Positions 5-41,668 of a stretch of 64,000 bases of DNA are shown piece by piece (position 1 is the first letter of the stretch; every line of letters begins with the position of its first letter). This stretch comes from Amphiscolops sp. MND2022 (Eukaryota). The DNA lies in contig OZ076420.1 in NCBI GenBank assembly GCA_964187785.1, positions 35,402,001-35,466,000 of the forward strand. The letters are read 5' to 3'. A program made the translations under genes and the position numbers. The notes beneath the pieces were generated by a model. It was not told the origin of the DNA and did no database searches. It worked only from the letters and a program-made list of their open reading frames with translations.

Positions 5-2221
5 ATGAAAAGTAGTAATTTGTTTCTTGTAACTCCGAGGGAAGTTACCCGCAGATTCAAAAATGCTGAATCCTGCTTGGACCATATCTACTCAGACTTA
101 CCAGTGGCTGAGAAGATAGTCTATCAAAGCTCAATAACTGATCATTACATGGTATGGACCGAATTTGAAAAACACCTACAGCCAATCATGTCAACACCAA
201 CGTGGTATAGAAATTTTAAGCCTCTAATGAGACCCCAAACCATGTCAAGTTTTCAAAATGGAATAAGCATACAACTTGAAAACATTGATTGGAATAACAG
301 TAGAATAGATCAATGTTTTGCCAGTTTGAATGAAATCATTTTGGACGAAACTGATATCTATGCACCTTATAAAAGAGTTTTGGTTGGTATGAAGAACAAC
401 TGGATAGATAACACGGTGAAGCGTTCCATTAACAAACGTGATATAATGCATAAGATGATGTGTGACCTCCCTGACGACCAAGAAGTAAAACATGCATTCA
501 CCATTCAACGGAATAAGACGAAATCTTTGATAAGAAAAAAGAAACGTCAGCATATACAATCAAAGTTTGACCAGAGCATAGGAGATCCTTTTCATCGAAA
601 TCTGAATGAAGTTTTCGGCAAAGGTAAAGAACCGATACTCCCAACGTTCGATGATGGAAAAACGCTAGATGACTTCAATAAGTATTTCGCTCTTGTTGGT
701 ATTAAGAATCGTGAGGGTATCACTCCGACCAGTGCAACTTTCAACACAAAAGACCAAGGAATGTCTCTATTCAAGAAACCTACGAATGAAAACGAAGTTT
801 CCTGTATAATTAAAAGAACAAAAAACACAACATCGATGGGAATCGATGGTATCAGCAATAAGCTATTAAAGCTTTGCATCCCTGCAATTTTACCTGCAAT
901 AACTACGTTGTTCAACCGCTGCATGCGGCAGGGGTATTTCCGAGAACGAATGAAAATTGCAAAAATCACCCCGGTATACAAAAAAGGAAATCGCGAAAAC
1001 TTCGTGAACTATAGACCAATATCACTGCTGCCTTGTATTTCTAAAGTCTTCGAAAGAGTTATATACGCCAGGTTGATCAACTACATAGATAAGTTTGACC
1101 TACTTTCCAACAATCAGTATGGATTTAGGAAGAAGAGGAGTACTATTGACGCATTGACTAATGTAATCGAGCAGATCAGGTGTGCAAGTAACGATGAGAC
1201 CCAGCTCTGCATTTTCTTAGACCTCAAGAAAGCTTTTGACACAATCGATCACTCCTTATTGTTCGGAAAGCTATATTGCCTTGGTATACGTGGTCCTGTT
1301 CATGATCTGCTCAAATCATATCTCACTAACAGGTTGCAATTTATCTGCATCAAAGGATCATCTTCTCAGATGGAACAAATCAATTGAGGTGTGCCACAAG
1401 GATCTGTACTTGGCCCCCTGCTCTTCATCATCTATATCAATGATCTACCCTCTGTAGTAGAGTCGAACCTCACATTGTTCGCTGACGACACTAATATCTT
1501 AGAACGAGTACCTAAAAACGATTACAATGGAGTCTTGAAAACACTGGACCTGGGCGTGATAATTGATGAAAATCTTTCCTTTAGAAGTCATGTGGATAGT
1601 AAAAAAAACAAATTTTTATATCATAACTACATTCTACTTCGAGTTAGACAACTCCTGACTCGAGAACAAATGTTATTATACTACCGAACTAGAGTGAATC
1701 CCATCATACAATACGGTGTTCTAGTTTACGGTTGTGCTCCCTTCTCGAATCTTCAGCCGATACATAGAACTCAGAGAAGAATAATGAGAACAATTTTCTT
1801 TTTTCCAAAATTTGCAAATGTACAACACTTGATGGCTAGTCATGAACTGCCAACTGTATATGAGCTCCATATTTACGAAATAATCAAGCTGATAATCAAT
1901 GCGATTTGCGAAAAGCAATCAGTACCATTCTTGAACCACTTTCTTGAACAACAAAGTAAACTATATTCATTACGGAAAACTAGCGTTGAACACTCCATCG
2001 TACCATATACCCGCTATGCGAGTGACAAGCAGTCGTTCAAATTCAGAATCCCGCTGCTTCTGAATAAACTGTATAAGTGGACTGTTTTTCCTGAATCATC
2101 AGCAATAAAGAGCTGGACACCTCATTATCAACAATTTTTCTGTCATCAAGTTCTGAGAAATTACATCATAGATAACCAAGAATTAATAGATGCTGTGTAT
2201 GGACTATCTCGAAATAAATGA
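5..2221 (+). mobile_element. Decayed non-LTR retrotransposon (CR1/L2/Jockey-group LINE) ORF2: end of APE endonuclease plus reverse transcriptase
   Basis: ORF 5-1387 has the endonuclease SDH-like motif (ITDHY) and RT motifs (NYRPISLLP, NQYGFRKKRST, FLDLKKAFDTIDH). An in-frame TGA at 1385-1387 is followed in the same frame by GVPQGSVLGPLLF and LFADDT. About 40 aa appear deleted between GVLKT and LDLGV. Non-functional. Confidence 0.93.
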
Positions 2222-2292
2222 ATTCGTCCAACCATCTGCTTCCAAAAACTCTGAGTGATTTTCATGAATAAAGTTTTATGTTAACTGCCTGA

Positions 2293-2429
2293 CTTAGCTG
2301 TTTTTTTCTTTGCGATCAGCTAAGATATGTTAGCCCCACTAGAAACATTGGTGAAACACCGATCCTTCACATCGGGACCCCAAAACTCAAGCAGTTTTGG
2401 AAGTATCGAGTGTTTCTAGTGCAAGGCTA
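2293..2429 (+). other. Structured 3' UTR of the LINE (hairpin plus multibranch stem-loop)
   Basis: CTTAGCTG/CAGCTAAG hairpin (2293-2323). A 13-bp stem CACTAGAAACATT (from 2337) / AGTGTTTCTAGTG (ending 2421) encloses GGTG-AAA-CACC, CCGAT-N7-ATCGG and CCAAAACT-N5-AGTTTTGG hairpins. Paired by eye. Confidence 0.6.
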
Positions 2430-2975
2430 GCATCGCCCGGAATAGTTGAATAATGATCAACATCGCTCGTAGAAAAATGTTTTTCCCAATTTGAGAAATC
2501 ATCGCTCGTCGTTTTCTCAAATTGGGTAACATAATTTTCTCGGTGAAAATGTTTTAAAAATAGCCCTAGGGGTTAACCTATGCCCAAATTTTCGGCAGCT
2601 AAAAAGTGTGATTTCTAGGGTTAAACCCCCCTTAATGAAGTGCAAATATTTTCATTGCCTATTTTCAGCAGTTACTTGAATTTGTTACCATTTTTTTTCT
2701 CCACCTCTCAAATTTTATACATTTCAATGATGTTCATACAGGCGGTCTAAGGCTACAGCCACACGTCATAAAATCGAGAAGAACTGATCTTGTGTGTGAA
2801 ATAGGTGTAAAACATCCTTACCATAACACAAACACTGGCTTATCATAAAAAAAATGTTGATTGAATAAAGTTTGATGATGAAGATGCTGTTTGATATTTT
2901 GATATCAACGTCCTCTTGAGCGGGCATTAGCCCTTGAGGGTCTTTTCTGGCTCTTTGCATACGGGTTTACTCCAT

Positions 2976-3148
2976 NNNNNNNNNNNNNNNNNNNNNNNNN
3001 NNNNNNNNNNNNNNNNNNNNNNNNNNNNNNNNNNNNNNNNNNNNNNNNNNNNNNNNNNNNNNNNNNNNNNNNNNNNNNNNNNNNNNNNNNNNNNNNNNNN
3101 NNNNNNNNNNNNNNNNNNNNNNNNNNNNNNNNNNNNNNNNNNNNNNNN
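2976..3148. other. Assembly gap (N run, 173 nt)
   Basis: Run of n characters. Confidence 1.
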
Positions 3149-3766
3149 TACACTCAATATTAAACTGCGCAGGACAAGTAACTCCGCTGTGTAAATAGCA
3201 ATGCCAAGTTACACCTTTAGTATTAAGATATTAAGGGGGTTATTTGGAACACGTAGATTGCTTCCAAAGGGGCTATTTGTCCTTAAGAATAACCCGTAAA
3301 ACAGATTTCCGCGGGCCATTTAAACCCCTGCAGTGGGAAACTAGTTTCAACAGTGCTAATGATATTGTTATGATGCATTACAACTCCAGTTCATTACCAC
3401 GTAACCAATGTTGGATAGGTACCTGCACTGCGTTTTCAGTTTTAGCACATTTCCAATTATGAATAAAAATTGTTCAGTTTTCTTCAAGTTTACCGAAGTT
3501 ACGTTTTTTACTTGGTTTTGGATAAATACTGCAGTTCCGGAGAAGTGAAATTCAAGAAGAAGAACTGTTTTATGATACAACGTAATTAATTGAGTTTTCA
3601 TTCAACCGTGCCTCGATCTTTTCAGTTAATTTCGATTTAGTACCCCCTCCTGCAGTAATTTATTAAAAGAAAACACTTTTGAATTGAAAAGTCTAAAAAG
3701 CTTTAGACTTAAGGAAAAAAACGAAAAACACTCCTGTTTCTCACGCTAACACCCATTCAGGGCTTT

Positions 3767-4273
3767 TCAAAAATTAATTGGAGGATCAACAATTTGCTTC
3801 GCTTGTATATGTAGCGGAACAAGTGCAACGAGTTCTTCTGCTGACAATGTTTCCAAGTTTCCAGAGAGGCATTTGACTACAGCATTGTCAAAGACCTTGC
3901 AGTGCACGATATGTGCCTCCTTGTCCAAATACTTCTTGAATTCTGGTTCCTTATATTCTTCGAGGATTTTGTCAAAAAGTGCTCTTGCATCACATAGGTC
4001 AATGTCTTCGCCTTGAAGTGCAACTGTGACAGACTTCAATTTCACAAGTTTCTCGCTTAACTCGTCTATGTCAGAGTTTTGCACTGGAGAAGGAAGGAGA
4101 TCAACAAGCTTTCTATCACTGCTAAGAAATTCCAAACTTGGTTTCAGTTTTATGTATCTCTGGACCATTGTCATTGTACTTAGCCAACGCGTCTTGTTTC
4201 GGACAACCGGTTTTAGTTTTGTAAATTCGCGTAATCGTCCAGCCAGCTTCGGCGATCGCAGTTTAACCATCAA
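3767..4273 (-). mobile_element. hAT-superfamily transposase fragment (truncated both sides)
   Basis: 168-aa ORF with the hAT TRW-S motif (KPVVRNKTRWLST) followed by LLPS...L.SV..ALQ...L.DAR.LFD...A.IVH...F..AVVK. No N-terminal DDE segment and no C-terminal dimerisation motif are visible. Confidence 0.75.
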
Positions 4274-4554
4274 ATTTTAAAACTCCCCCCCCCGGTTACC
4301 CTTGGAGGAAAGTATTTCATCAGCATATTCTCTCATACCAAGCCAACCCCCAAGTCTTTATTTTCCCAGCTAGGTCATGAAAAATTATCCTTGTGGTAGC
4401 AACTATTAATTAATGGTAGCAACTATTAATTTCATTTGTTTTTCCATGTACTATCTAGTATGCACTATCTACTCATTTTTTGTAACTTCTTCCAACTTAT
4501 TTCTCAACCTCGCTCAAACATACGGATACGAAAACTAACACTAGAGAAGTGAAT

Positions 4555-4682
4555 TTCCAAGGAAAGCGTAAGGGGAACATTACCATGGTGGAGACTACAA
4601 TCTAAATACTAAATCTAAGCACCAATGGAGAGAGGGGAAAACAACAAAGTTTGCCAGGACCAAGACTTGCGAAGCGACAGCT
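4555..4682 (+). pseudogene. Degenerate inverted partial copy of the 5' part of the FLYWCH-like gene
   Basis: TTCCAAGGAAAGCGTAAGGGGA..TACCATGGTGGAGACTAC..CAATGGAGAGAGGGGA..CAAGACTTGCGAAGCGACAGC matches the reverse complement of about 5153-5275 with indels and substitutions. Confidence 0.85.
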
Positions 4683-4879
4683 TAGGTGGGGAATGAAATG
4701 GGCCGAAGATGTTCAAAAAATGAATGAAGACATGAAGAAATGAACAAATGATAACGATTGAGAATTGAAGTGTTGAATGAGAAAGTTACTCGATCAATTT
4801 TTGAAAATTTGACTCTTATTCGGATGAAAATGTTGTATAGAGAATATAGTTATATAGGTCGCTTGGCAAGGTCAAGGCT

Positions 4880-5305
4880 TCACTGGGCTTCCGCTCTTCG
4901 TAGGCGGCTTCGACGCTGACGCATAGACGCCAACGTCTGCTGCCGCCTCTTCCGAGCTTCGGCCCTGCCTGTGGAGGACGTCTCCGACCACGTGACTGCC
5001 TCGTCATAGATCTGGCTGCAGCCAGGGCCGTCGAACGTCCTCTCGGCTTCGTCCTTGACTCTTGCCAGCCGTTTGATGTCTTCGATTTCTTGCATCGATG
5101 GTTGAGTATGGTTGTGGGCCCTTCGTTGAATTAGGATTCGGTCCCGCACCACGGCTGTCGCTTGGCAAGTCTTGACCTGGCACTTTAGATATGTAGTCTC
5201 CCCTCTCTCCATTGACTTCAGGTATAAGTAGTCTCCACCATGGTAGTAGAGGCTCCCCTTGCGCTTTCCTTGGAAGGTGATGTAATTAGGAACGTTTGTT
5301 GTCAT
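4880..5305 (-). CDS. Small FLYWCH/WRKY-GCM1-like zinc-finger protein (141 aa from ATG at 5305), with a basic helical C-terminus
   Basis: Pattern Y-L-Y-L-K...T-Y-L-K-C-x4-C-x16-H-N-H (YLKCQVKTCQATAVV...AHNH). Intact single ORF, more GC-rich than its flanks. The Trp of canonical FLYWCH is replaced by Leu. Confidence 0.72.
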   Translation of the reverse strand: MTTNVPNYITFQGKRKGSLYYHGGDYLYLKSMERGETTYLKCQVKTCQATAVVRDRILIQRRAHNHTQPSMQEIEDIKRLARVKDEAERTFDGPGCSQIYDEAVTWSETSSTGRAEARKRRQQTLASMRQRRSRLRRAEAQ

Positions 5306-6307
5306 TTCTAACAAAGTTGATTTCTCTATTTAGAATTTGAAGTGAATTTTTGCCAACTTGCACATTAAGTTGATTGATATTTTCCCTAAATTTATAAACT
5401 AATTTGAAAAGCGTTTTCCTACTTTTGAATGTTCAACTGAATTTCTTAACACCCCCCCCTGGGAAGTACAAAAATTTGACTAAAACTTATATGCAATTAA
5501 TTTATTATTGTTTTAATTGGTTGCGGGCAATTAAAATATAAATTAATTGCAAATAATATTTTTTGGGGGGGGGGGGGTGGTTGTGGTATAAAAATAACAA
5601 AATACTCAATTTCAAATTTGTGTTTCGAAATTCAGAGATTTAAACTTTTAGGAATTTCAAATGAAATTAGCTTTAAAAACTTTCAAAATTAGATAAGCCA
5701 GAGAGAAAAGCAATTCATTCGATTAATTTTTCCGGGGGGAATTAAAAGGCAAGACCCAATTTGAGTATTGTTGTTTCAAAAATCAAGGATTTCAAGTTTT
5801 AGAAATTTCAAATGAGTTTAGATTTAAAAACTATCAAAAATAGAAATGAATGAATGAAGTCATTCAATCAAAAATAGAAATGCAATAGAGAAACCAACTG
5901 CTGTATTTGGGAGCTCAGGCAAACAAATGATTTGTAATGGCGAATTGCTCGCGTTGGCGAATTGCATTGTCCAGGTTGTTGACGTTAGTCACGCGTAAAT
6001 AGGAAGAAAGTGCTAGAAACAACTAACAAACTGGCTATTACAGAAACATCGGATGTAAACCGATATTAGCATGACACGCATTTTATGGTGAAGGGAACTA
6101 CTGTCGTTTCAATTTCATGCTATTCGCTCTCATGCTGATTTTGACGTAATCCTTTTGCCGACCCATGATCGGAATGAAAGAATTCGGAAGGAGAGAGAAA
6201 GTGTTATGTTAGGAAATACAGAAATACAGTAAACGATCCATTGAAAGTAAGTAATTGTTGACGTTTGTCACGCGTAAACTAACTGGAATAGTTGTTAATT
6301 TAAACAA

Positions 6308-6570
6308 AGGAGTTATTTGTCCTTTAGTATGTATTGTACGGGGGTTATTTGTCCTCTGATATTAAACAGGAGTTATTTGTCTTTTATTATTTCTTATACG
6401 GGGGTTATTTGTCCTCTGATATTAAACAGAGGAGTTATTTGTCCTTTAGTATTTTTTAAACGGGGGTTATTTGTCCTCTGATATTAAACAGAGGGGTTAT
6501 TTGTCCTTTAGTATTTTTTAAACAGGGGTTATTTGTCCTCTGAAATTTTTGGTACAGGGGTTATTTGACC
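6308..6570 (+). repeat. Tandem array of 9 copies of GG(G/A)GTTATTTGTCC at about 30-32 bp spacing (alternating ~61-bp dimer)
   Basis: Read directly: units alternate ...GTCCTTTAGTAT.. and ...GTCCTCTGATATTAAACAG; the last copy ends GGGGTTATTTGACC. Confidence 0.95.
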
Positions 6571-6937
6571 TCTCAATTACTCAGAAAAAATTTGTAACAA
6601 GTACTGCGAAAATTCAATAAAAAAACGAGTCCACATTTTTTTTTGGATCTTGGGTATAAACTGACTGGTGTGAAAAAGGCAGAAAGTGAAAAACGACTCA
6701 ATTCTTGCGACACATTTCTAAACGAGTAGTCACACACTCAAAAGCCTCAATTTTTTTGTTCGCACTTGCATCAGCCGAGACTCTTTTTGGTCTCTCGCTG
6801 AAACTGTAGTCACAATCTTTCAAATTAGTTTCTATTCTTGATCATCGCAGGTCACATCGAATTATTTCAAAAACCAATCCCTCATCTAAGCTACAAAAAA
6901 TAGCTGCTCTGCTTTAAACTTCATTAATCTTTCAATA

Positions 6938-8869
6938 ATGCCAAGAACAAGGTCACAAGAAGAAACCCCGAAAATTCAACTTCGAAGTCGCCAAGTTAAA
7001 ACTAAAATCCCTCCACCAAATAATTTGAATAAGAAAATAAAAATCACAAAAGAATTGGCGTTCAAATTCCTGGCTCACGCAGACGCAGAGGTAACAACTG
7101 AATACCTCGATTCAGAAAAGATCAAAAGTCATAAGATTGAAACAGAAAAACCCACTGATGAAGAATTGAAACTCCCAGAATACAAAAAACTGGAAACAGA
7201 GCTCCGAGAAGCGTACCTCCAAAGTATGGAGGAAGTTGTTTTCCTCGAGAAGGAGAAATATCAAGAAGAGAAAACGTACAGCGAGCTCGGCGTTTTCACA
7301 AAAAAAGCATTTAAGAAAGCGCAAATTATACCCGGTTTGAAAGGAATGACAGCATTCTGCCCGAACACTATCACAATTGATACTTTTTCCGTTTTGGACA
7401 AAGGGAGAAAAAACTTAGAACGTGTAATGCTGGGCCCAGCTTCCTTTATTAATCATGCGTGCAAACCCAATGCAGATTGGGTAGTTCAAGGCGAGTGGTC
7501 AAAAACAACTTTGGTTGTGAAGACAATTCGACACATCAAAAAAGGAGAAGAAATTACGCTATCTTATGGCAAACACTTTTTTGGCGTCGATAACAAGGAT
7601 TGTGGTTGCACTGATTGCAAGGACAAAAAGAACGGCACTGAGGAAAGAGACGAAACATCAGAAGCAGATATCTCATCAGAGCCAGACCCAAACTTGCATC
7701 TTGAACCAGAGTTACAACCAGAATCAGAACGTGAACGGGAGCCGGAGCAGATTGAACGAGGGTCAGAACGAGAACCAGTCTTGTCTGTTGCTACAGAGTT
7801 ACAACAAGAATCAGAACCACATTTGCAACTTGAAACTGAACGGGGGACGGAAATTCATGTTGAACCAGAGCCAGAGCCTGTCTACACGGAATTGCTACCA
7901 GTGAACAGGGATTTAATGGAGTTCCTGGATTCACAGGACCTCGCTGATTTTTTGGACGTCAATTTCGCGGAAATGTCAGCGATTCCCCACTACACCCCAA
8001 TGGAACCTTTCCAATTCCAGCAATTCCCTTATATGCATCCTTGCCCACCTTACATGGAAAAAATGAATTACATGCCACCATATCCACAGCAATTCAATTA
8101 CATGCAGCCGTTTTATCCCCCGATGCCACCTCAACCACTAATACAACAACATCCTCAACCCACCAACTCAACTCCGCTCTCTGCTCCAAAAATGCCGCAA
8201 GATCCAGGTCCTAGCAAAAAATCCACCAATTGCAGAGCAATTAAACTAGATGAGCATATAGAATGCCTAATTTGCCGAAATGTTGTCAAACGAATGGACA
8301 AGCACCTCGAGAGTCATAATCTAGAAAAAAAAGAAATTAGGTATATAATGGATTTTTTTCGGACAAAAGACCCTGGAAGAAAAACAGTATGGCACTGTGA
8401 AGAATGCTACCGAAGATTCTCATGTAAAAAAACACATAGAAAAACATGTCAGGCTACATTACAAGAACTTGAAAATCCCTCGAGTAAAAAATCTCTCCCT
8501 CAGAGCATCCGCGACAAATGCAAAACAAACATTCTCGCTCGGGAAGATGATGTGCAAGTGGTTGAAAGATTTATGAAGCAGCAACAGGTTCTGGCGGATA
8601 TGTCAGAAAAAAACGGCCCCGAACAGTCAGTTGCTGCCAAGGTTCAAATTTGCGCGCTGTTGTTCAACGAAACAAAGAAACTGACTGATGCTAAAGCCCT
8701 TGTGGAGTCAGCCCGCAGAATTCAGATGAGGAAATCGTTGAAGCCGCAATCCATGCTTAATTACCTAGCAACATTCAGCCATTTTGTGGAGTATTGCTTC
8801 ATGTACGAGGATGGAGTATGCTCCCAAAATAATAACCACCACATGATGATGAATGCTGCAATACGACAG
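6938..8869 (+). CDS. SET-ZnF-tyrosine recombinase gene, exon 1 (644 codons): SUV4-20/Set9-type SET plus post-SET, acidic and P/Q/M/Y-rich linker, two Zn-finger-like motifs, start of YR core-binding domain
   Basis: SET motifs FSV...RKN...LGPASFINHACKPN...IKKGEEITLSYGKHFFG..N..CGCTDC (about 7280-7620). CLICRNVVKRMDKHLESH (8264-8317). CEECYRRFSCKKTHRKTC (8396-8449). LKPQSMLNYLATFSHF resembles a YR core-binding helix. Donor CAG|GTAATT at 8870, phase 0. Confidence 0.88.
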
Positions 8870-8975
8870 GTAATTATTCAAGAAAAATTAAAAGTTTAGC
8901 TCTATAAAATTAAAACTCATTTGGAAAAAAATAAATTATAGAAATCTTTCAATGAATCGATTTCTGAACCGACAA

Positions 8976-9240
8976 AATTGTTGACGTTTGTCACGCGAAA
9001 GAGAAATGCTATTCTCGCAAAAGAGTTATTACAATTGAATATTGAATCTTACAATCGCATTGAATGATAGAAATAAGATTCGAAATATACTAACTAATTG
9101 TTGACGTTTGTCACGCGAAAGAGAAATGCTATTCTCGCAAAAGAGTTATTACAATTGAATATTGAATCTTACAATCGCATTGAATGATAGAAATAAGATT
9201 CGAAATATACTAACTAATTTTTGACGTTTTTCACGCGGAA
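8976..9240 (+). repeat. 120-bp tandem duplication (2 identical copies plus start of a third) in intron 1 of the SET-YR gene
   Basis: Lines at 9001-9120 and 9121-9240 are near-identical; each unit starts with TTGTTGACGTTTGTCACGCG. Confidence 0.95.
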
Positions 9241-9320
9241 GAGATGTTATTGAACGATGGAAATAAAAATCGTGGAAAAAACATCGTGGAAAAGTTGGGC
9301 AGAAAATTGTTTTGTTTCAG

Positions 9321-9779
9321 ACTAAGAAAGCATTCAGAAGCGCTGCTGCTCGGGATTACAAGAGAGTGGCAAAACAGCTTAGAGCGTTGGTCCCTAGCAC
9401 GGAATTGATAAGAGAAAGGATGCAAGGGACACTTGAAATCCTGAAAAAAAACTTGAAAGAAAATAGCCTGTCGTACAAATTACAGCAGACCCTAAACTTC
9501 TTCCTTTTACAAGGTAGACTCAACGTAAGAGCTGGACCAATCCTAACCCTAACTTGGGAGGATTTCAGATGGATTGAGGAAAACGATGCCCCCTTGCAAA
9601 CCGATAAACATAAGACAGGGTCATACTATACAGTACACATTCAAATTGAAAAAGACCAGCGGGAGTTCCTGAAACGCCAGAAAGAAGCTTTCGTGAGAGA
9701 GGTGGGGGAACAACCTAAATTCATTTTCGCCTCACACAAAAATAAAGAAGAGAGGTCCATTTGCCGGTATTTGCGCGAG
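9321..9779 (+). CDS. SET-ZnF-tyrosine recombinase gene, exon 2 (153 codons): YR catalytic domain N-half
   Basis: Acceptor TTGTTTCAG| (phase 0). Encodes GRLNVRAGPILTLTWEDF (catalytic R at 9528-9530) and TDKHKTG (K at 9612-9614). Donor GAG|GTAATT at 9780. Confidence 0.88.
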
Positions 9780-9856
9780 GTAATTTTTAGACTTGTGATT
9801 TTACCACCACAAACGAACAAATACTTTCATTCCATTTTCATTTCTATTTTTTCCAG

Positions 9857-10157
9857 GTCTTCTTCACTCTGTTCAATGACGATCCCAGTGTTGTGCGATT
9901 CAATGCTAACTCTATCAGAAAGTATTGGGAACGTCGTTGGAAAGTTATTGGAAAGGACTCTGGGGACGGCGTAATGAAAGCGCATTATGCCCAAACTGCA
10001 CATTCGGCAAAAACTGCCGAAGATCATTACATTGGACGAGAAGGCACAGAGTCGGACCGTGCATGTCTCCTTTCAATGTACGCAAACGATTTGGCTTTGA
10101 GACCAGGATGCCAGGAGGAACCTGCAATGGAAGAGCCCGAAGAGGCATCTGACTCAG
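9857..10157 (+). CDS. SET-ZnF-tyrosine recombinase gene, exon 3: YR catalytic domain C-half
   Basis: Acceptor TTTTTCCAG| after a 77-bp intron (phase 0). Encodes NANSIRKYW (second R at 9917-9919) and AHSAKTAEDHY (H at 10001-10003, nucleophile Y at 10028-10030). Donor CAG|GTAATT at 10158, phase 1. Confidence 0.88.
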
Positions 10158-10300
10158 GTAATTTTCATGTTTTTTTTTCATTTTGCGTATTTACTAAAAT
10201 TACGTAATTTACCTAAATTAATGCCCCTTTACTGAAACTGTATTTAGACAAAATGTCTCAAAATCAATGTCTCAGAATGATTTTTTCTCTTTTTCTCTAG

Positions 10301-10671
10301 ATTCTTCAGATTCTGACATCAGTGAGCCGGATGATCAACCGCCGCTGAAACGCCCCTGCCTCACTGCCCCCGCCCCCAAACCAAAGCCCAAAGTTAACAA
10401 CCCGCGTGACTCCATAAATTCAACACTACATTCAGATCCACAACGTGACGCATTCATAAAGTCGCTGAAGTGCTTCCGCAGCACCGGCGGCAAAAACGTA
10501 TGGACAGAGCGGGAAAAAGATGCAGTTGCCCTTTTTTTCCAAGTGAAGCTGAATCCTGCTTATGGGGATATAAAAGCCCGCTGCGAAGAAGCCGGATATA
10601 TTTTTGCCGAAGACGTCTACATCAGAATATACAACAAAGTGAAGGCGGCCACTTTCCTTCATTTGAGATAA
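10301..10671 (+). CDS. SET-ZnF-tyrosine recombinase gene, exon 4: acidic/basic linker (NLS-like PPLKRP) and Myb/SANT/homeodomain-like HTH; stop TAA at 10669-10671
   Basis: Acceptor TTTTCTCTAG| in phase 1, matching exon 3. KNVWTEREKDAVALFF...P....I...C resembles a W-T/S-x-x-E helix-turn-helix start. Spliced total is about 1,020 aa. Confidence 0.78.
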
Positions 10672-11112
10672 ACTTCATTTGCATTAGTTTCATTTATTCT
10701 TTCTTCAATTTAATTCCTATTAATACAATATTATACTGAATCTTATAACTCTAGAGAGGGATCCAAACTAACGAGAAAGTTTGGATCCATTTAGGCAGGA
10801 AATACAACTAAGCAAAATTGTGATTCTACCTCGGTGTCCCGGCAAATTCTTCCGAATAATTCGTCGAAAAATAAGTCGAACCAAATGAACCAAATATGGA
10901 TCTTTTCCGTTAATTCCCCCCAGGGGTGTTCAATAAACATTTATGGGTAAGAAAAATTATACTGAATAAAATAAATGTTTTGTTTTCACACTCACTTAAA
11001 TAAAAATGTTTTTTTTTGCACCTGTTAAAATAAAAATAATTATTCTTGAGAATTCAATTAAATTCGAAAATACTGTGGGGGGAATTGACAGAAAGCTGCA
11101 AATCATTGGTGA

Positions 11113-11402
11113 CTTCCCATAGCTCCGAATATCCATAGCAAAATCGAGTACCATAACTCCGAAAATTTATTTATTTATTTTAGTTGAAAAAATACGCAGA
11201 TCAAGCAAAGAATGAAAATTCAACTGGCGCTCTCGCTTTGGTCATTTCTCTCAATATCGACCTTGTAATTGAAATCAAATAAATGAGGTAAATTCAGTTT
11301 AATTTCTATGGCAAATTAGCTGTGGCACTAGATTTTAGTTTAGGAGCTATGGCACTGAAATTCAAATTCGGAGCTATGAATAGTCATGAATAGTCTATGG
11401 GA
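11113..11402. repeat. Small foldback/MITE-like inverted repeat with CCATAGCTCCGAA subrepeats
   Basis: Left arm carries CCATAGCTCCGAAT, CCATAGC and CCATAACTCCGAA; right arm carries GCTGTGG, GGAGCTATGG, TTCGGAGCTATG and CTATGGGA. No TSD seen. Confidence 0.55.
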
Positions 11403-11573
11403 TCAAGGCCCGAATGCATTTTCAATAAAAACGAAGATAAGTGGTTGAAGTAACAGCTACAACCTGTTTGTAAATAAGTACCTGCTAAATGTCTAAACTC
11501 TAGTTACAGTTGAAGCACAGAAAATTGAAGATTAAACAAATATTAAAAAGACTAACATCAATTTGTATGCTTC

Positions 11574-11913
11574 TGCGTGACTAAAATCAACAATTCTGTT
11601 TCTGCTTTAGACTAACTAACGTCCCAATGTCTTTCTTTTCCATTCCACCTTTTTATGAGAAATTGCGTGACTAAAATCAACAATTCTGTTTCTGCTTTAG
11701 ACTAACTAACGTCCCAATGTCTTTCTTTTCCTTTCCACCTTTTTATGAGAAATTGCGTGACTAAAATCAACAATTCTGGTTCTGCTTTAGACTAACTAAC
11801 GTCCAAGAGTCTTGCTTTTCCTTTCCACCTTTTAATGGGAAATTGCGTGACTAAAATCAACAATAACGTCCAAAAGTCTTCGTTCTTCTCCTTTCCACAT
11901 TTTTATGAGAAAT
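11574..11913 (+). repeat. 90-bp tandem array (about 3.8 copies)
   Basis: Unit starts TGCGTGACTAAAATCAACAA at 11574, 11664, 11754 and 11844. Confidence 0.95.
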
Positions 11914-12691
11914 ATAAAGGAAAATTGATTTGAAATATAATTTGTTCGAAAGGAACAAGAACACTTAAGCTCCCTAGAATGGTGATTCAAGGGAACTTAG
12001 ACAAAGTTAAAAAAACAAAGCTCCAACTTCCTGCAACGTCTAAGAAATAAACGTCAGCTCACCTCTTTCTGTCTTTAAGGGTGTGTAAAGCGACTGAAGT
12101 TGAATCAATTGATCAGTTATTATAGTATATGAAAGGTATGATCTTTATCGAAAACAAGGACACTGTTGCTTTGGGAACCGATCGATTTGCATTGATCATC
12201 TATTTGCACCTCGGTACTCGGAATTAAAGTGAAATTACACCAAGTATTGATCACCAAAAATGTATCAAAAAGGAGTAATTTGGCATTTCTTGCGTTGGTA
12301 GAAAACTTCAAGCAGTATATATACGGTACTACGTAGAACTTCTCTGATACCAATATTGTGTGTTAATTGGCTTGACTGGCCTAATTAACGACGAGGCGCC
12401 ATAATAATGCACTAATAATAAGGGTGTAGTTTGTCCTTGAGATTATCTGAAAAGGGGTTATTTGGCATTGGGAAAAGGCCCTTAATATTTTGGGATATAC
12501 GCGATCGATTTCGTTCAAACTTTGTGAAAAGTATTTTTTAAGGGTTTCGGGCAATTCTGCCAAATTTCGTTTTCCTACGACCCGTGGAAGTGGAGATTCA
12601 GGGTCATGCCAAACTACTCCCCAAATAACCCCTCAGCTGGTGGTATTTGGTATGTGCTAAAATACAACTGTGGGGTTATTTGGCACTGCGT

Positions 12692-12694
<3 letters not shown>

Positions 12695-12762
<68 letters not shown>

Positions 12763-19299: not shown

Positions 19300-22200
19300 G
19301 TGTAATGTGAAATACTCAAATACCTTACCGTTTTCATCTATAAATAAGAGTCCTTTATCTGCGCATTTAGCGTCATCTATTGCACGGTCGTTCTCCGTGT
19401 CCGTCATATGGGCGGAAACGACAGTCAGCGGACCAGAACTGTCTTCCCGGCGAGCTCAGGGGAGAGTTTGAGCCGAGTAGGTTCCTTATCAGCTTTGGGC
19501 TGTGTCCGGACCAAATGTGCCCTTCTGTATAGTGGCGTTGTCTGTCGACTTTTGTAAATCGGGCGTCTGATACCTGAGAACCGGTTCCTCTGTTGTTTGG
19601 GTTCTGCACAATTGCAGCTTTTAGGATACTTACACATCGCATATGTACAATTTTCCCAACTTAGGTGGTAATTGGGAGTTTCCGCCCGATATTGCAATTT
19701 GTGGTTTCTCGGAGTACGGAGAATTTTGACGCATCGAGACTTTTTAGGAGGAAAGATCTATTGAAAATCTTTTTTTTCTTCGGCTTCATGGGTAGCTGGT
19801 CAGAAACACCGCCAGCTTGACTGAATGAGTACACCTGCAAAGTATCAGGTTTCGCTGAAATGAAATTTTTGTTAGTTTTTGCAATATTTCTAACTTGCTT
19901 CTTCAGCAGATTGCTCATTTTGGTCTTTGGTTTCTAGTCACAACAAAGTTCGAAAGCAGATTTTTTAGCCTTGTATTCGGTGTTTTTAGTCGGCGCTTTA
20001 TCCTTTCAAGGAAAATTGTCCAACTATAGCAAAGACCTTTTTTAGTCAGCGCTTCATCTTTTTAAGGAAAAATGCCTGACTATAACATTTTTTTCTTCAG
20101 ACTACAATCTTCACACTGATCGGTCCACTTTTTAGAAACAATCCTGGAACCACCTACGGCTCCAAGTCCGGCCAAGGGGCCAAGGCAAACTTAGTGCAAA
20201 GGGTCCATCCTTTCATTTTTACTTTTTTAACATAACCTACAAAATCGCCCGAGACTAAAGGGTCCCCCCTTTTGATTTTTCTGGGGACTGTGCAACTTTT
20301 TTCGAAATTTTTTAATGTCCCAAAGGGTCCCCCTTTGAGTTTTTTGTTATTTTGCACCAGAATGCATGTTTATAAATCAAAAAGGTCCCCCTTTTACATT
20401 GTTTGGCACTCTGCGACATTTTCCGAAAGATAATAATTTTCGAAAATTTCAAGTTTTTTTCCAAAAAAAGCTTTTGCGCTTTTTGAGCATCAGATATAGC
20501 GCCGTCTTTAGACGTTCTCGTCTTGTTTTCTTCAGACTACAATCCTCACACTGATAGGTCCACTTTTTAGAAACAATCCTGAAACCACCTGAGGCCAAGT
20601 CCGGCCAAGGCAAACTTAGTCCTAAAGTTCCCCCCTTTCATTTTTTACTTTTTCAAGGTCCCCTACAAAACTGGACGGGACTAAGAACGTCCCCCTTTTG
20701 ATTTTTTTCCGCACTGTGCGACTTTTTTCGAATAACTTTTCATCGTCTCAAAAGAGTCCCCCTTCGAGTTTTTTCATAATTTGCAACTGAATGCAGCGCC
20801 GACTTTAGACGTTCTCGTCTTTTTCTAAATATATCTAGGGACATTTCCAAAGCTTTGCTAAACTTTTCGCCGTTTTTGGAAGTGAGTAGACTTTTTGTGA
20901 AGGTTCTGACCCCAGGTTCTACCAGGCCCTTCGCGGTGTGAATTTCGCAGATTATTTTGAAAAAATGAATTTGCGAAACTTTCGGAAGGACCGGACCGTA
21001 AAGGCGGTAGCTTTATCGTCCCAGTGGTTTTTGATAAACCGTTCAGTTCAATGTCCTGTTCGAGAAATCTTACTGCCAATACTTCGTCCGTTGTCGTACA
21101 AAATCTCGCCGCCGGATATTGCGTTCGATGGTTGTCCGATGTAATAGAAATGAATTTCTTCATTTGCAACTTCCAGTGGTGGTAGTCCGCTTTTTCTCTA
21201 CTTGGTATATTAGGTTTAATTTTTTTACCTGACATTTGCAGAGAATGCAAGTATTGCATTTTTTTTCGAAGTGTCTCCATCATCTTCGGCCACCAGAGGT
21301 TGCGCGCTACGAGCACCATCTTGTTGATTCCGGGATTTTCCTTGAGTAGGTTGGCTTTTTGTTGTGGTTTGGAGACTCTTTGACATCACAATTTGTCTTC
21401 TGTACAGGCCAGAACGAACCTGCTGGATAGATTTTCCTCGTTTGATCTAGTACATTTCAAGTATTATTTCGTGCTGTTGTCGTCCCACATATACTAGCGT
21501 CTTCAGTAGGTCTGAATCATTCATTGGAGGTCTCCGTCATCAGTAGCCGCAAGCCTACTGAATAAATTGTTCAGTTTCTCTGACGGCATGCTTGAGATCC
21601 TAATTGTTTGTTTTCTTCTGCAGCTAGTCGAGGGGCTTGCCTCATCGTGACATTTTGGACGCTCTTTACTCCGAACTTTTGTGTCCAATTGATTGCTGGC
21701 ACTTCGAGGTTGGACGAATCTTGGTCCGTCTCGGAGTCGATATGTTCCCCTTCCATGGCAACCGGCATTTACTGGTTTTGTCTGTTTAGGGCTGTTGATG
21801 GTCGTAATCATTTTGTGATGAATGTGGTTATGGTCACTCCGTCTCTTTGAATGGGTGGTCGGTCCACTGTCTTGATTGTAGTGTCTGTTGTTGAAAAATC
21901 TTTCAGCGTTGTGGTTCGCTCTGCTGACGTGAATCACCTGGGCTGCGGTTTCTAATGATTTGCTGTAATCGATCATTGATTACTTTGCGTTCCTCTCGAG
22001 GAATTTTAGTACGTTATGCCTCTTAAATTTTGCTCCGCTCATACCGGGGTTTCCAATCTCTTCCTACGTTCTAATCATTTCTGTGGTTTCAGATGTTTGT
22101 TTGATTGGAGCGATTCCGTTTATTTAACGGCTCTAGTGCCTGGTGATCAGTTAATAATTTTGTTGCCTTACCGTAGACGTACGAACTAAAATGTTGGAGA

Positions 22201-24349
22201 CCCCAAACTACTGCTAATAAGTCAAGTTCAATCATCGCATAGTGTTCCAGGTGTCTGATATGAAGCAGCTTGCTAACCTTATTTGTTTCAGCTTTCCGTA
22301 TTTCTGCTCCTGTTACAAAGTTGCTCTGTGGCATTTGGTACTTGCGCGTCTGTTGTTATGATTTTCGGCTAGTTTGCATTATGGTGACCCAGACTCGACA
22401 TTCGTATTTCGTCCGCCGGACCGTCTGCAGTTTCTCTCAATTAATTGAGTTCAGTTGCTCCATGTTCGGTATTGGAGCTTTCCTCTTCACAGTGATTCCA
22501 ATAGTTTTTACGTGAGTCAAGAGCGCTTCTTTACTGTGATAACGGGCAGGCTTGCAAAGCTGTTGACGTCGATGTTTTTGAACTTTGCGGAGGGACATTG
22601 TTTTTTCATTTTTTGTTTTTTTTTCTACTGATTGTTGTAAAAGAAACGGTACGGATCTTCGCTTTTGTTGCATAATTTTTATGTCTTCTTTAAGCTGTAT
22701 TTTCACCTCCAGACCCTTCATTGTATAGTTTTCTATGACTTTTTTTGTCCGCGTCGTCCGTTTCACGGTTGATTTATGGCTCGGTTCCATCAAAATTCAG
22801 TGTTATCCCCAGCTTTTTCATCCAAAATAGAGCCATTACAGAATGTCGTTCTGTTGTTATCAAATATTCGAGACGTTTTTCTTCGCCATCCGTTTCACAA
22901 ATTAACATTGCTTTTCCTTCGAATGTAATCCGCTTGTCGGTTACGTCTCTATACTTTATCTAGCGGATGTAGGGGTGCTGAGTTGTCGAATACTGACTTT
23001 GGTAGGATTGTAACCAGTGAACTGCTGTCTATAATACATATGATTGATAGGTTGTTGAGCAATGTGCTTATCGTGAACAAGCCAGGACCATTTTGGTTTG
23101 TAGAGCGCATCAAATGTATCGTTTTGATCCCATGATTAGATGGTGTCCGATGACCAATCGTTTTCTTCCTCGCTACTTGTTTCTTCTTCCTGTGTATAGT
23201 TCACTCTTTTACTGGATCGGTAACATTTTGCAAAATTGGACCGTTTTCCACAATTCGAACCTTTCTTTCCTTCAGACGGGCTTTGATGTTGTCGCGTCTA
23301 ATTGAGAGCTGCATGGCTGTTGCAATCCACTGTTTAACAATTTGCAGGTTTGTCAACTGGTTTGCTTGTGGGTTTTGTTTTTCTTCTGTCAAGGTAACTT
23401 ATTTCTTCTCTTCTTTCTCTAATGAGTCATTCATTTCATTGCACATGTACTCGTGAATGGTATCGGTTATAGCCTCCGCCGACATGTCACTTACTTGTTT
23501 TTCTTTTACTAAATGTCACCGGTTGACTTCCGGATATGGGATAAAAATTTTCAAGCGATGTAAGCGGTTGTGCCTATGTTGTGGAATTCACTGTTCTTTC
23601 AACTTCCAAAGTTTGTTTCGTGACGCTGGTCGTCCTGGTTTCGTACGTCTGCTGCTGGTCCTCCATTTTTTCGTTTAAGGTCAACAAATCTGCTGTTGTG
23701 TTTCACGTTTCTGATTGGACAAAAATGTAGCTGGAACAATGCGTACACCACTTTGTGTAACTGTAACGAGCTTGGTTCTCTTCACCTGACCGTCTTTGTA
23801 ATCTCTGTGGAAGCGTTTTATCCAATCGTTCTTTGGAATGTCTCTTTTGTTTCAATTTCTGGTTGCTCACCGTCTTCTGGCAGTATTTCTTTGCAGCTTG
23901 TGATTGTTGAAATGTCCAAATCTTTTGTCATCCTTATGTATTGTACAAATTTCCGCCACCACAGGCTACCATCGATGTGATCATGCTATTGGAGTGTTGG
24001 ATTGGGAAGTTTCTGGATACAAGGTCGGTCTTCTGACCTGTTCAATGTGTCGTTGGGCACAAAGTCTCCGCTTGTCCCTCCCTGATCCCGCCGTCATTGT
24101 TGTTGTCGTTCCTTTTCTTGGATGTGTTTCTTTATTTCCATACAATGTACGTTTTGTTGTTTCGGGTGTATGGTAATCTGATATAACATGAATAGTGATC
24201 CGAATGCAACGCACCATATTGTATTCTTTTATCGCAAGGCACGGGAACTTTTATCAAACCAAATTGTATTCTTTTTGCAGTTAAACCTAGCCCCTCTGCA
24301 CCCAACTGGCAGGTATAAATAAAATACGTAGCAACAGTAGACAAATTAA
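19300..24349 (-). mobile_element. Decayed, internally deleted Ty3/gypsy gag-pol composite (probably more than one element), interrupted by Helentron-like repeats
   Basis: RNase H motif YAMIELDLLAVVWGLQHFSSYVYGKATKLLTDHQALEPL (22089-22334). RT start IQLKED..IMQQKRRSVP and TVKRKAPIPNMEQL (22437-22793). Integrase Zn-finger/core VARNLWWPKM...SGKKIKPNIP (20858-21319). Gag-like low-complexity remnants at 21500-22050 and 23100-24300. Confidence 0.8.
19960..20824 (-). mobile_element. Two tandem copies of a non-autonomous dispersed repeat (AAAGGGGGACCC-rich), DINE-1/HINE (Helentron)-like
   Basis: The 5' end AAACAAGACGAGAACGTCTAAAG(A/T)CGGCGC appears on the minus strand at about 20528 and (degenerate) 20824, with internal AAGGGGGACCC repeats. 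A shared segment CTTCAGACTACAATC..GGTCCACTTTTTAG lies at about 20095 and 20530. Confidence 0.7.
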
Positions 24350-34785: not shown

Positions 34786-35924
34786 GTTCCACAAGGATCA
34801 GTGCTAGGCCCTTTTCTTTTTCTACTGTATATTAATGACCTAGACAATGCTTGCACCGAAAGTTCTTTAACAATGTTCGCGGACGACACGACAGTTATCA
34901 AAGCAGGTCGTAGAACTGATTCTCTTATCCGCAAAGATGTGAAAGTAATGACCCATTGGTTCGATGCTAACAAATTGACAATCAATGTCGATAAATGTGA
35001 AGCGATTCATTTTGGAAGGGGCATACCTGATGAAGTTCAGATCAAAGATAACCATTTACATTACAAACCCTGTTGCAAATATTTAGGTGTTTACATTGAT
35101 CCAACGCTGACTTTCAGAGACCACATAGATTATGTTGTGAAAAAACTGAATAAATTCTGCGGTTTAATTTACCACGTAAGGCATCTGTACCCTAAAAAAT
35201 GTTTGTTAATGTTTTACAACGCGTATGCTAAATCGATCATAACATATGGCTTATTAATTTACGGAGCCGCGGCCAAAACTAATCTATCTAGAATTGAGAG
35301 TGTACAAAGAAGAATTCTACGAGCTATTTTTTTCAGAAAACGACAAGATTCCTTGCAAGAAATACTTGCTGTGAACAAAATCAATACTGTCTACGAGCTT
35401 TTCTTGAACGAAGTGGTTTCTGAAGTTTTCAAAGAAATGAGATCTGATTCTCCATTGAAATTACTAGACTTTGAAAAATTGCCCAAGTCCAACACGACAA
35501 CAAGATGGAACTCCAAAGGAGTTTTCGCTCCAATTGCGTCTCGAACTGTAGTCAAGAAAAAATGTTTAGCAAATTCATTAATGAAAGCTTATAATTGGTT
35601 AACTGAATTGAACCTAATACCCCCTAACTTGCTAAATTTGAGCCAAGAGCAATTGAAAAAACATCTAAAACTTGTCAACGACCTATACATCACTGACAAT
35701 AAAGAACTTTTTTGTCTCTATTTTTGTGCCTAAAACATTTAACCGAGCAAGATAGCATGCAAGTTGGTGCTTCTATTATATGCAAAAAGGGCACTAGCTG
35801 GAAGAGCAATTATGCTCATCTGGTGTCCTAACTGGATAAATTGAATGATAAATAATTATTTGTATTATTTTGTTTCATGCTATCCAGTTAAATAAACTTC
35901 TTCTTCTTCTTCTTCTTCTTCTTC
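34786..35924 (+). mobile_element. 5'-truncated CR1/L2-group LINE (RT C-terminal half, 3' UTR stem-loop, AATAAA, (TTC)n tail) in an Eph intron
   Basis: VPQGSVLGPFLFLLYINDL, MFADDT and KYLGV in an open frame to 35733. GAGCA-ATTA-TGCTC hairpin in the 3' UTR. AATAAA at 35891 followed by (CTT)n to 35924. Confidence 0.93.
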
Positions 35925-41133: not shown

Positions 41134-41382
41134 GTACGTTTTTTTTAATTTTCAAAAATTAACAGAGAACAAAAATGGCGATAAAACACAGAAAAGTAAT
41201 AACGCATTTGCTGACTTGCAGTTTACATTTCTGTTTATTGTTGTGATTCTTTTCATGAATTTTTTTTCGCAACTTCTCCGATTGGAGCCCATTTTCGGTA
41301 TCAAAATTTTTGGATGATGTCAAAACCAACGTCTGTAGCATTCAAGAGAGAGCATTTTCTTTCAAAAAACCTGCGTTTCCAG

Positions 41383-41668
41383 GACAAAGGTTCCTGTTCA
41401 ATGCTGCTTGCTATCAACATATACCACTATGTTTGCCCGAAGCAAGTTTTGGGTTTGGCCTGGTTCCCGAAAACGGCCATGGGAGCCAGCGGGTCCAAAA
41501 AACGAGTAGAAGCATTCCACTGTATAGAGCATGCATCCACTAGTAGCGAGAGCGATAAACCCGAAGCCTATTGCAAAAACGGGGATTGGGAATCGAATAG
41601 GTACTTGACCTTTCTCTGCGAATGTGACCCCGGGTACACCCCGAACAGGGAGAACACGATGTGTCTGC
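41383..41668 (+). CDS. Eph: Eph receptor exon (LBD end plus sushi/Cys-rich region): DKGSCSMLLAINIYHYVCP...CECDPGY
   Basis: TTTCCAG| ... C|GTAAGT, phase 0 to 1; matches D.GAC..L.SV.VYY..CP...LA.FP.T. Confidence 0.93.

Follow-up and report, generated by a model that had tools for sequence, protein, structure and literature searches.

We found a 9.6-kb repeated DNA element that encodes, in one spliced gene, a SUV4-20-like histone methyltransferase domain joined to a predicted tyrosine recombinase. The element lies in a 64,000-nt stretch of contig OZ076420.1 (hereafter the window; all features are on the forward strand unless stated otherwise). Several distant relatives share this architecture, and we found no description of it in the papers that could be searched. 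The observation made in the first-pass annotation, that four open reading frame pieces join through three introns into one protein of about 1020 residues, is confirmed.

The gene consists of four exons (6938–8869, 9321–9779, 9857–10157, and 10301–10671; 1932, 459, 301, and 371 nt) separated by three GT-AG introns (8870–9320, 9780–9856, and 10158–10300). All three donors read G|GTAATT, and each acceptor follows a pyrimidine tract. The intron phases are 0, 0, and 1, giving 644 + 153 + 100 + 1 + 122 = 1020 codons before the stop at 10669–10671. Intron 1 holds a 120-bp tandem repeat (8976–9244).

Three independent checks put this splice model beyond chance. First, a diverged sister family (loci L002, L008, and L009; ∼76%–86% nucleotide identity) keeps the GT/AG sites. 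Exons 2 and 3 align to it without gaps and exon 4 has only in-frame gaps, whereas the introns are 57%–67% identical, with length differences that are not multiples of three. Second, dN/dS of the window against L008 is 0.16 for the SET domain, 0.30 for the linker, 0.03 for the zinc-finger and helical part, and 0.04, 0.07, and 0.04 for exons 2, 3, and 4. Third, contiguous database proteins bridge every junction in tblastn searches. The intron-less relatives P0006 and P0039 (database proteins) and L012 (a genomic locus) run straight across every junction. Intron 1 is absent from P0006/L010 and L012, exons 2 and 3 are contiguous codons in L010 and L012, and P0006, P0010, P0063, and P0022 continue into exon 4. 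In the alignment of the recombinase family the last residue of exon 2 abuts the first residue of exon 3. The exons were searched one by one, with the natural intron-less relatives standing in for the joined protein.

Exon 1 encodes an N-terminal region, the SET/post-SET domain, an acidic and P/Q-rich linker, zinc fingers, and a helical region. The SET and post-SET part (7235–7636, about residues 100–233) has a Pfam SET match at residues 118–211 (E = 4.7e-12). Residues 148–233 match ten PDB chains of KMT5B/C (SUV420H1/H2) at E = 7.7e-16 to 1.6e-14, far better than any other solved protein; the next best is a viral SET protein (1n3j, residues 116–214, E = 6.8e-5). The NH.C motif, the catalytic Tyr, and the C.C..C post-SET cluster are invariant between the window family and P0039, whose own SET domain also matches only SUV420H1/H2 and KMT5B (2.6e-7). 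The similarity covers only the C-terminal half of the SET fold and the post-SET cysteines: The alignment to KMT5B starts at chain residue 164, no match to the SUV4-20 N-terminal domain was found, and the structure model of residues 1–250 failed (pLDDT 38).

The acidic, then P/Q/Y/M-rich linker (7643–8227) contains internal repeats and varies in length between copies; exon 1 ORFs of 653, 698, 728, and 767 codons occur in different copies. The next segment (8264–8437) holds a C2H2-type zinc finger (C443, C446, H456, and H460), whose four residues are conserved in 11, 11, 11, and 10 of 11 distant relatives, and a second Cys pair (C487 and C490) conserved in 11 of 11, followed by H500 in seven of 11. 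These residues are invariant in a further alignment of relatives, and the segment gives a weak ROS_MUCR hit. The remainder of exon 1 (8438–8869) aligns to relatives that lack SET and is predicted to be helical. The first-pass annotation called this region core-binding and the C terminus a helix-turn-helix; both labels are only inferred, since they rest on helices in the AlphaFold model of P0006 and there is no family hit.

Exon 2 encodes the first half of the recombinase catalytic domain (Arg I and His-Lys-Thr-Gly); we found 80 relatives of it among 1.84 billion representatives. Exon 3 encodes the second half (Asn-x-x-Arg-Lys, His, and Tyr nine residues later) and an acidic tail. In the family alignment, Arg I is conserved in 17 of 18 sequences, Lys in 17 of 17, Arg II in 18 of 19, His in 17 of 18, and Tyr in 15 of 18, and all are invariant in ten relatives of 21%–27% identity. 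However, the His of the His-x-x-Arg motif is Asn in 17 of 19 sequences. Exon 4 contains a Ser/Asp/Pro-rich stretch and then a small conserved domain, predicted to be helical (pLDDT 85–96 in the P0006 model), which is 38%–47% identical in P0006, L010, and L012 and has no Pfam hit.

An integrase fold for exons 2 and 3 had been set beforehand as a test of the recombinase assignment. In the AlphaFold model of P0006 (47%–58% identical to window exons 2 and 3; pLDDT 77), the ten best Foldseek matches in PDB are all tyrosine recombinases: an MRSA integrase at probability 0.99, then lambda Int and XerA, with XerH, Flp, and Cre further down. Matches in BFVD are led by VLF-1 proteins and phage integrases at probability 0.99–1.00. 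The E-values are weak (0.06 in PDB and 1.3e-3 in BFVD). The window's own recombinase exons have no Pfam or PDB sequence hit, and Pfam Phage_integrase (PF00589) is reached only below threshold in two relatives, at 5.5e-4 and at 2.8e-4 (21.2 bits against a cut-off of 27.1). We found no DUF3504 (PF12012) hit at E up to 10 in 20 family members, or at 0.01 in 18 further proteins.

SET and recombinase are linked in six further lineages, down to 27% identity, although other relatives lack SET. These are P0039/L003, one uninterrupted 895-codon ORF; L012, with the whole order in one frame; L010, from a second assembly; L011; L004; and L008/L009. The SET ORF of L004 gives only weak, generic SET hits.

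The gene lies in a repeated unit that runs from 3149 or earlier to 12694, or to 12762 with its right-hand (TAA)n tract (12693–12762); the true left end is hidden in a run of N (2976–3148). Four other loci that we read (L001, L005, L006, and L007) carry the unit at 98.6%–99.4% identity over this span and no further, with different flanks, either singly or, in L001, in head-to-tail arrays. Cluster members of the SET exon lie on at least 12 contigs. On the right, homology ends sharply in the (TAA)n tract, and a similar tract lies on both sides of copies in L005, L007, L008, L009, and L011 and at the unit-to-unit junctions of L001. Two further families in the same assembly have the same layout and (TAA)n flanks. 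Some copies are truncated, internally deleted, or frameshifted; all four other near-identical copies have at least one break in the recombinase exons, so the subfamily may be decaying.

A 12-bp motif marks both ends of the unit and an internal array: 16 of 21 motif hits lie in the element, against 4.4 expected for the whole window, and the layout is kept in the sister family. The left terminal region (3149–3560), 77% identical in the L008/L009 family, has two copies (3236 and 3269). An array of about nine copies with a 32/62-bp period (6300–6585) lies 350 bp upstream of the start codon and is kept in L002, L008, and L009. The right terminal region (12348–12694) has copies at 12454 (+), 12621 (−), and 12672 (+), the last two forming a 19-nt inverted repeat; at 90% identity in the L008 family, this region is more conserved than the coding parts. 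A 90-bp tandem repeat at 11574–11864 holds a second repeated motif in inverted orientation. A repeat search found only these motif families and short arms between the two ends, with no long terminal inverted or direct repeats, although the outermost bases of the masked left terminus are outside this comparison.

The unit also contains a FLYWCH-like zinc-finger ORF on the reverse strand (4880–5314), transcribed away from the SET-recombinase gene. Its Pfam FLYWCH match is below the gathering cut-off (E = 0.0013; 19.3 bits against 23.6), but it is 80% identical in amino acids to its L008 counterpart, with dN/dS of 0.20. A 168-codon ORF, also on the reverse strand (3767–4273), has no Pfam hit and no match in the L008 family and lies in a variable segment absent from L007; it is probably not a core part. 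There is no other ORF of 120 codons or more in 3149–12723, and no ORF of the unit has a reverse transcriptase (RT) or RNase H family hit.

The region is best explained, with fairly good confidence, as the coding core of a Crypton-like DNA element that integrates into (TAA)n tracts. Our data directly establish a dispersed, nearly identical repeat, single or in head-to-tail arrays, bracketed by (TAA)n, with conserved motif-bearing ends and no RT; they also establish the single spliced gene with its domain order and conserved recombinase residues, and the divergent FLYWCH-like ORF under purifying selection. The mechanism, by contrast, is inferred. In this view the recombinase would excise the unit as a circle carrying one (TAA)n tract and re-insert it by strand exchange within a genomic (TAA)n tract, leaving (TAA)n on both sides and, when the target is a resident copy, a head-to-tail array. 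No empty site, circle junction, or transcript has been seen, and tandem arrays can also arise by unequal crossing-over. Likewise by inference, the 12-bp motifs would be binding sites for the zinc-finger, C-terminal, or FLYWCH modules. The weakest inference is that the SET domain was captured from a host KMT5-like gene and is brought to the element's DNA by the recombinase moiety, where it would methylate a lysine on a nucleosome, most likely histone H4, or on a partner protein, which could temper the element's own expression or mark the recombination site.

The interpretation offered in the first-pass annotation is supported only in part. One spliced gene, a SET domain closest to SUV4-20, a recombinase that keeps its catalytic residues (apart from the Asn noted above), and a multi-copy, Crypton-like element rather than a single-copy domesticated gene are all supported. 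Its placement of the element in an animal genome is plausible but unproven from the sequence alone. Its statement that no RT is linked to the gene needs correction, since an RT gene lies 4.7 kb upstream on the same strand; this gene is outside the repeated unit and looks LINE-like, so the element is still not DIRS-like, but for a different reason. Its suggestion that some oomycete CryptonS elements carry a separate SET ORF is not borne out by the Crypton paper, which reports a C48 peptidase and never mentions a SET domain (PMC3212892). Its proposal that the integrase deposits H4K20me2/3 at the element's own copies is pure inference.

A more far-reaching reading is that the enzyme that cuts and joins the element at (TAA)n tracts would also write a histone mark on the nucleosomes it lands on, by means of a host-derived H4K20-type methyltransferase. 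This would be a mobile element that sets its own chromatin state in cis, kept for long enough to span relatives of 27% identity in at least two hosts and in environmental samples. The evidence does not exclude this, but we consider it doubtful.

Among alternatives, the most viable concerns the SET domain only, and it remains a real though less likely possibility: The domain may instead methylate a non-histone protein (the recombinase itself or a host factor) or a different histone lysine, or it may be a noncatalytic binding module. The KMT5B/C match covers only residues 148–233, the N-terminal 100 residues have no match in P0039 or L004, the SET of L004 is only generically SET-like, and selection on SET is looser than on the recombinase (0.16 against 0.03–0.07). 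On the other hand, the key residues are invariant between the window family and P0039, and only KMT5B/C score strongly for both proteins.

It is unlikely that the recombinase module no longer recombines and serves, like the DUF3504 domains of domesticated Cryptons, as a sequence-specific DNA-binding module that brings SET to the motif arrays, with the units multiplying by unequal crossing-over or segmental duplication. The Asn at the second-His position, the head-to-tail arrays, the broken recombinase exons of the four other near-identical copies, and the motif array in front of the gene, which resembles a regulatory target, are consistent with this. However, Arg, Lys, Arg, His, and Tyr are invariant across relatives of 21%–27% identity, dN/dS is 0.04–0.07, and copies on many contigs with unrelated flanks share exact boundaries at (TAA)n. 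Second-His substitutions in Cre-type enzymes reduce activity but do not abolish it.

Still less likely is a host family of domesticated SET-recombinase genes duplicated in tandem. Strong purifying selection on every domain, the spliceosomal introns, and the tandem copies would fit this, but ∼9.6 kb including noncoding DNA is 98.6%–99.4% identical at unlinked loci, copies are broken, at least 12 contigs carry cluster members, two further families share the layout and (TAA)n flanks, and homology ends sharply at the microsatellite. Least likely is that the gene is the recombinase end of a DIRS/Ngaro-type retroelement whose RT is the upstream gene (5–2221; Pfam RVT_1, interrupted once by a stop), since, although L005 also has an RT upstream of its copy, the repeat unit starts after the RT, no other locus read shows DNA similarity to the window's RT gene, the L005 gene is only 36% identical in protein and carries an Exo_endo_phos_2 endonuclease that marks it as a LINE, and no RNase H, inverted terminal repeats, internal complementary region, or split direct repeats were found.

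Crypton DNA transposons (Goodwin et al. 2003; Kojima and Jurka 2011, PMC3212892) likewise have a recombinase as the only enzyme of mobility, lack RT and long terminal repeats, and have genes with introns; their integration is thought to proceed by recombination at a short sequence shared by a circle and its target. The present recombinase differs in lacking a DUF3504 match, which is reported for the three animal Crypton recombinases tested by Kojima and Jurka (PMC3212892), and in having N-terminal C2H2 fingers, a fused SET domain, and a C-terminal domain predicted to be helical; the unit differs in its (TAA)n tracts on both sides, 12-bp motif arrays, and second, FLYWCH-like ORF. The Crypton papers that we read mention no SET domain. 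KMT5B/KMT5C (SUV4-20H1/H2), histone H4 Lys20 methyltransferases, are the best and only strong PDB matches to the SET domain, with about half of the residues identical over 86 positions, including the NH.C motif, the catalytic Tyr, and the post-SET Cys cluster, but only the C-terminal half of the catalytic domain aligns. DIRS, Ngaro, and PAT retrotransposons also use a tyrosine recombinase, and DIRS elements carry a methyltransferase-like domain (PMC13465315), but the present unit has no RT/RNase H, no inverted terminal repeats with an internal complementary region, and no split direct repeats. In domesticated Crypton genes with DUF3504 (KCTD1, KIAA1958, ZMYM2-4, and QRICH1; PMC3212892), a recombinase-derived module is joined to other chromatin or transcription domains, including zinc fingers. 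Those are single-copy host genes, most of which have lost their catalytic residues, whereas here the residues are kept and the unit is multi-copy. Finally, chromatin or DNA-modification domains of hosts have been built into the coding capacity of mobile elements and kept under selection before, as with DNMTs in retrotransposons (PMC5890265), TET/JBP in fungal DNA transposons (PMC12730594), and MBD in arthropod Copia (PMC6673714); here the domain, inferred to be captured from a host, is a histone-lysine methyltransferase-like SET domain, fused in one chain to the recombinase of a DNA element.

The window is AT-rich eukaryotic DNA (about 36% G+C), with ORFs on the + strand at 6938-8899, within 9312-9974, within 9893-10207, and at 10267-10671. 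The three introns proposed in the first-pass annotation are bounded by GT at 8870, 9780, and 10158 and by AG ending at 9320, 9856, and 10300. Every donor reads G|GTAATT, and every acceptor follows a pyrimidine tract. The resulting exon lengths of 1932, 459, 301, and 371 nt give phases 0, 0, 1 and 1,020 codons, and the window copy is open throughout.

We tested the splice model with the exons taken one by one, using three comparisons. First, a sister family in the same assembly (loci L002, L008, and L009), 76-86% identical in DNA, keeps GT and AG at the three introns. Exons 2 and 3 align without gaps in this family and exon 4 has only in-frame gaps, while the introns are 57-67% identical, with length differences that are not multiples of three. 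Second, dN/dS between the window and L008 is 0.16 for the SET domain, 0.30 for the linker, 0.03 for the zinc fingers and helical region, and 0.04, 0.07, and 0.04 for exons 2, 3, and 4. Third, proteins found by an exhaustive HMMER search with exon 2 (80 hits among 1.84 billion representatives) are collinear with the window across each junction in tblastn. In the alignment of these recombinase relatives (A2), the end of exon 2 abuts the start of exon 3 with no gap or overlap. In two related loci, L010 and L012, exons 2 and 3 are adjacent codons and the exon 1/exon 2 junction is uninterrupted.

The SET domain scores 4.7e-12 against Pfam SET. Against PDB sequences, the 10 best matches are all KMT5B, SUV420H1, or SUV420H2 (E 7.7e-16 to 1.6e-14, residues 148-233); the next is the 119-residue viral SET protein 1n3j (6.8e-5, residues 116-214), followed by KMT2, ASH1L, and SETD2 at 1e-4 or worse. 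The NH.C motif, the catalytic Tyr, and the C.C..C post-SET cluster are invariant between the window family and the distant relative P0039, whose own SET domain also hits only SUV420H1/H2 and KMT5B. However, the match does not reach the N-terminal half of the KMT5 catalytic domain, and an AlphaFold model of window residues 1-250 built from a four-row alignment reached a pLDDT of only 38 and is unusable. The SUV4-20-type assignment is therefore supported by sequence for the C-terminal half only, and the substrate, which the first-pass annotation took to be H4K20, remains an inference. Protein word-index searches with the whole of exon 1, with the SET region alone, and with a profile of long relatives added nothing beyond the window's own family.

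The recombinase exons of the window have no Pfam or PDB sequence hit, exon 2 alone included, and a profile of 20 relatives likewise finds nothing among PDB sequences. By contrast, an AlphaFold model of the relative P0006 (441 residues, 47-58% identical to exons 2-3, mean pLDDT 77) gives only tyrosine recombinases as its 10 best PDB matches, comprising an MRSA integrase at probability 0.99, lambda Int, and XerA, with XerH, Flp, and Cre following, although the E-values are weak (0.06-0.5). In BFVD the best matches are VLF-1 proteins and phage integrases at probability 0.99-1.00, and the fold neighbors include recombinases of insect viruses. Two relatives touch Pfam Phage_integrase below threshold. 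The candidate catalytic residues are conserved: Arg I in 17/18, Lys in 17/17, Arg II in 18/19, His in 17/18, and Tyr in 15/18 sequences. All are invariant in 10 relatives of 21-27% identity, as are the C2H2 finger and a second Cys pair. The nine-residue spacing of His and Tyr matches lambda Int, Cre, and XerD, but the His of the usual His-x-x-Arg is Asn in 17 of 19 sequences. No member matches DUF3504, a match that Kojima and Jurka report for the three animal Crypton recombinases they tested (PMC3212892).

The fusion is also real outside the window. P0039 (895 residues, encoded on JGI metagenome contig L003) has SET and recombinase in one uninterrupted ORF. L012 (GenBank WGS contig JAAUXW010332506.1) has SET, fingers, helical region, catalytic domain, and C-terminal domain in one frame without introns, with one in-frame stop. 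L010, from a different ENA assembly (ERZ25071359), has a SET ORF just upstream of its recombinase ORF on the same strand, and so do L011 and L004, from the window's assembly. Other relatives of 680-750 residues begin with the fingers and have no SET. The recombinase with its fingers is therefore the older module, and SET an addition kept in part of the family. In scans of the JGI metagenomes, alignment A2 found L012 and a further locus, L013, whereas P0039 alone found nothing.

By blastn, window positions 3149-12723 form a unit that is repeated at 98.6-99.4% identity in four other loci (L001, L005, L006, and L007). In L001, three units lie head to tail, one of them cut by the locus end and one internally deleted; in L005, L006, and L007 the unit is single, with unrelated flanks. 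Members of the exon-1 protein cluster lie on at least 12 contigs. On the right, homology ends in a (TAA)n tract (12693-12762). A like tract lies just left of the unit in L005 and L007 (left flanks were compared by length only), at the L001 junctions, and on both sides in L008, L009, and L011, although L006 lacks a clean left tract. The only N run of the window (2976-3148) covers exactly the place where the left end of the element and its left (TAA)n tract are expected.

The 12-mer at 3236-3247 (GGGGTTATTTGG) has 21 matches with up to two mismatches in the window, against 4.4 expected. Sixteen of these lie in the element: two at the left end, nine in the array at 6300-6585, and five at the right end. 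The layout of one left, five or six internal, and three right motifs (+, -, +) is kept in the sister family, whose right terminal 415 bp is 90% identical, more than its coding DNA. A second repeated motif of about 17-19 bp contains a TGACGT core and may be a regulatory or protein-binding site. It occurs upstream of the gene (5969-5998 and 6248-6277), three times in the 120-bp tandem repeat of intron 1 (8971-9240), and four times inverted in the 90-bp repeats downstream (11575-11863). Rfam found nothing in the window.

A FLYWCH-like ORF on the other strand (4880-5314) is 80% identical in L008, with a dN/dS of 0.20. A 168-codon ORF, also on the - strand (3767-4273), sits in a segment of about 0.5 kb that is missing from L007 and has no match in the L008 family; it is a variable part of the unit, with no family hit. 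The acidic linker contains direct repeats (7676-7875) whose number differs between copies, and exon-1 ORFs run to 653, 698, 728, or 767 codons. The window copy is open in all five pieces tested. Each of the four other near-identical copies (the L001 full copy, L005, L006, and L007) has at least one break in the recombinase exons, always including exon 2, in the form of frameshifts, stops, or a deletion. L001 and L007 also have a frame change in exon 1, L006 has a stop in exon 4, and the L001 units carry one deletion in the FLYWCH-like ORF. L008 and L009 are open in all pieces, and L002 has one shortened piece.

There is no RT in the unit. A LINE-like RVT_1 gene at 5-2221 (+) lies just upstream of the element on the same strand but outside it, and no other locus read shows DNA similarity to that gene. 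L005 also has a LINE-like RT gene just upstream of its copy on the same strand (1916-5577), but the two are only 36% identical in protein, and the L005 gene has an Exo_endo_phos_2 endonuclease ORF. Both element copies may have landed in the (TAA)n tail of a non-LTR retrotransposon. Far from the element, another RVT_1 ORF lies at 34801-35733 (+), and an ORF at 41314-41769 gives weak EGF/ephrin-type cysteine-rich hits; neighboring loci hold Ty3/gypsy-type polyproteins and a weak trypsin hit, which fits an animal host but does not prove one. The region 20001-24000 shows a strong AT skew (-0.22 to -0.31), with two minus-strand ORFs of about 150 codons (20858-21319 and 21521-21976) that have no Pfam hit.

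The architecture, the selection, the copy structure, the motifs, and the (TAA)n flanks are shown by these comparisons. The mechanism, however, is inferred: In this view the element would be excised as a circle with one (TAA)n tract and integrate by strand exchange within a genomic (TAA)n tract. Such a model explains the tracts on both sides and the head-to-tail arrays. It also fits L007 (541-6355), where a solo right-end fragment (85% identical to the window's right end) is followed by two head-to-tail copies of an unrelated 2,666-bp unit (99.96% identical) and then by the full element, each separated by (TAA)n, so that different units seem to have used one (TAA)n tract repeatedly. It is likewise an inference that the fingers, the C-terminal helical domain, and the FLYWCH-like protein are candidate readers of the 12-bp motif, and that the SET domain, tethered by them, would methylate a nearby nucleosome or a partner protein.

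Among other readings, a single-copy domesticated gene is rejected because of the many near-identical and broken copies, and a DIRS-like retroelement because the RT lies outside the unit. A resemblance of the ORF at 3767-4273 to hAT transposases carries no weight, since it has no Pfam support and the ORF is absent from the sister family.

Full-text literature searches found no description of a SET-recombinase element, and two Crypton papers (PMC3212892, PMC13465315) mention no SET domain. The elements found here define a recombinase lineage that matches none of the Pfam families used to find Cryptons or Starships, and annotation pipelines therefore probably miss it. If the inferred mechanism is correct, they would give a clear case of microsatellite-specific integration with head-to-tail arrays, and the family also offers natural variants with and without SET for comparison. 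Mobile elements are usually the targets of histone methylation rather than its authors. Precedents for captured epigenetic domains (PMC5890265, PMC6673714, PMC12730594) concern DNA methyltransferases, TET/JBP dioxygenases, and a methyl-CpG reader; to these the present family would add a histone-lysine methyltransferase, covalently tied to the recombinase and conserved across deep divergence, which argues that it helps the element.
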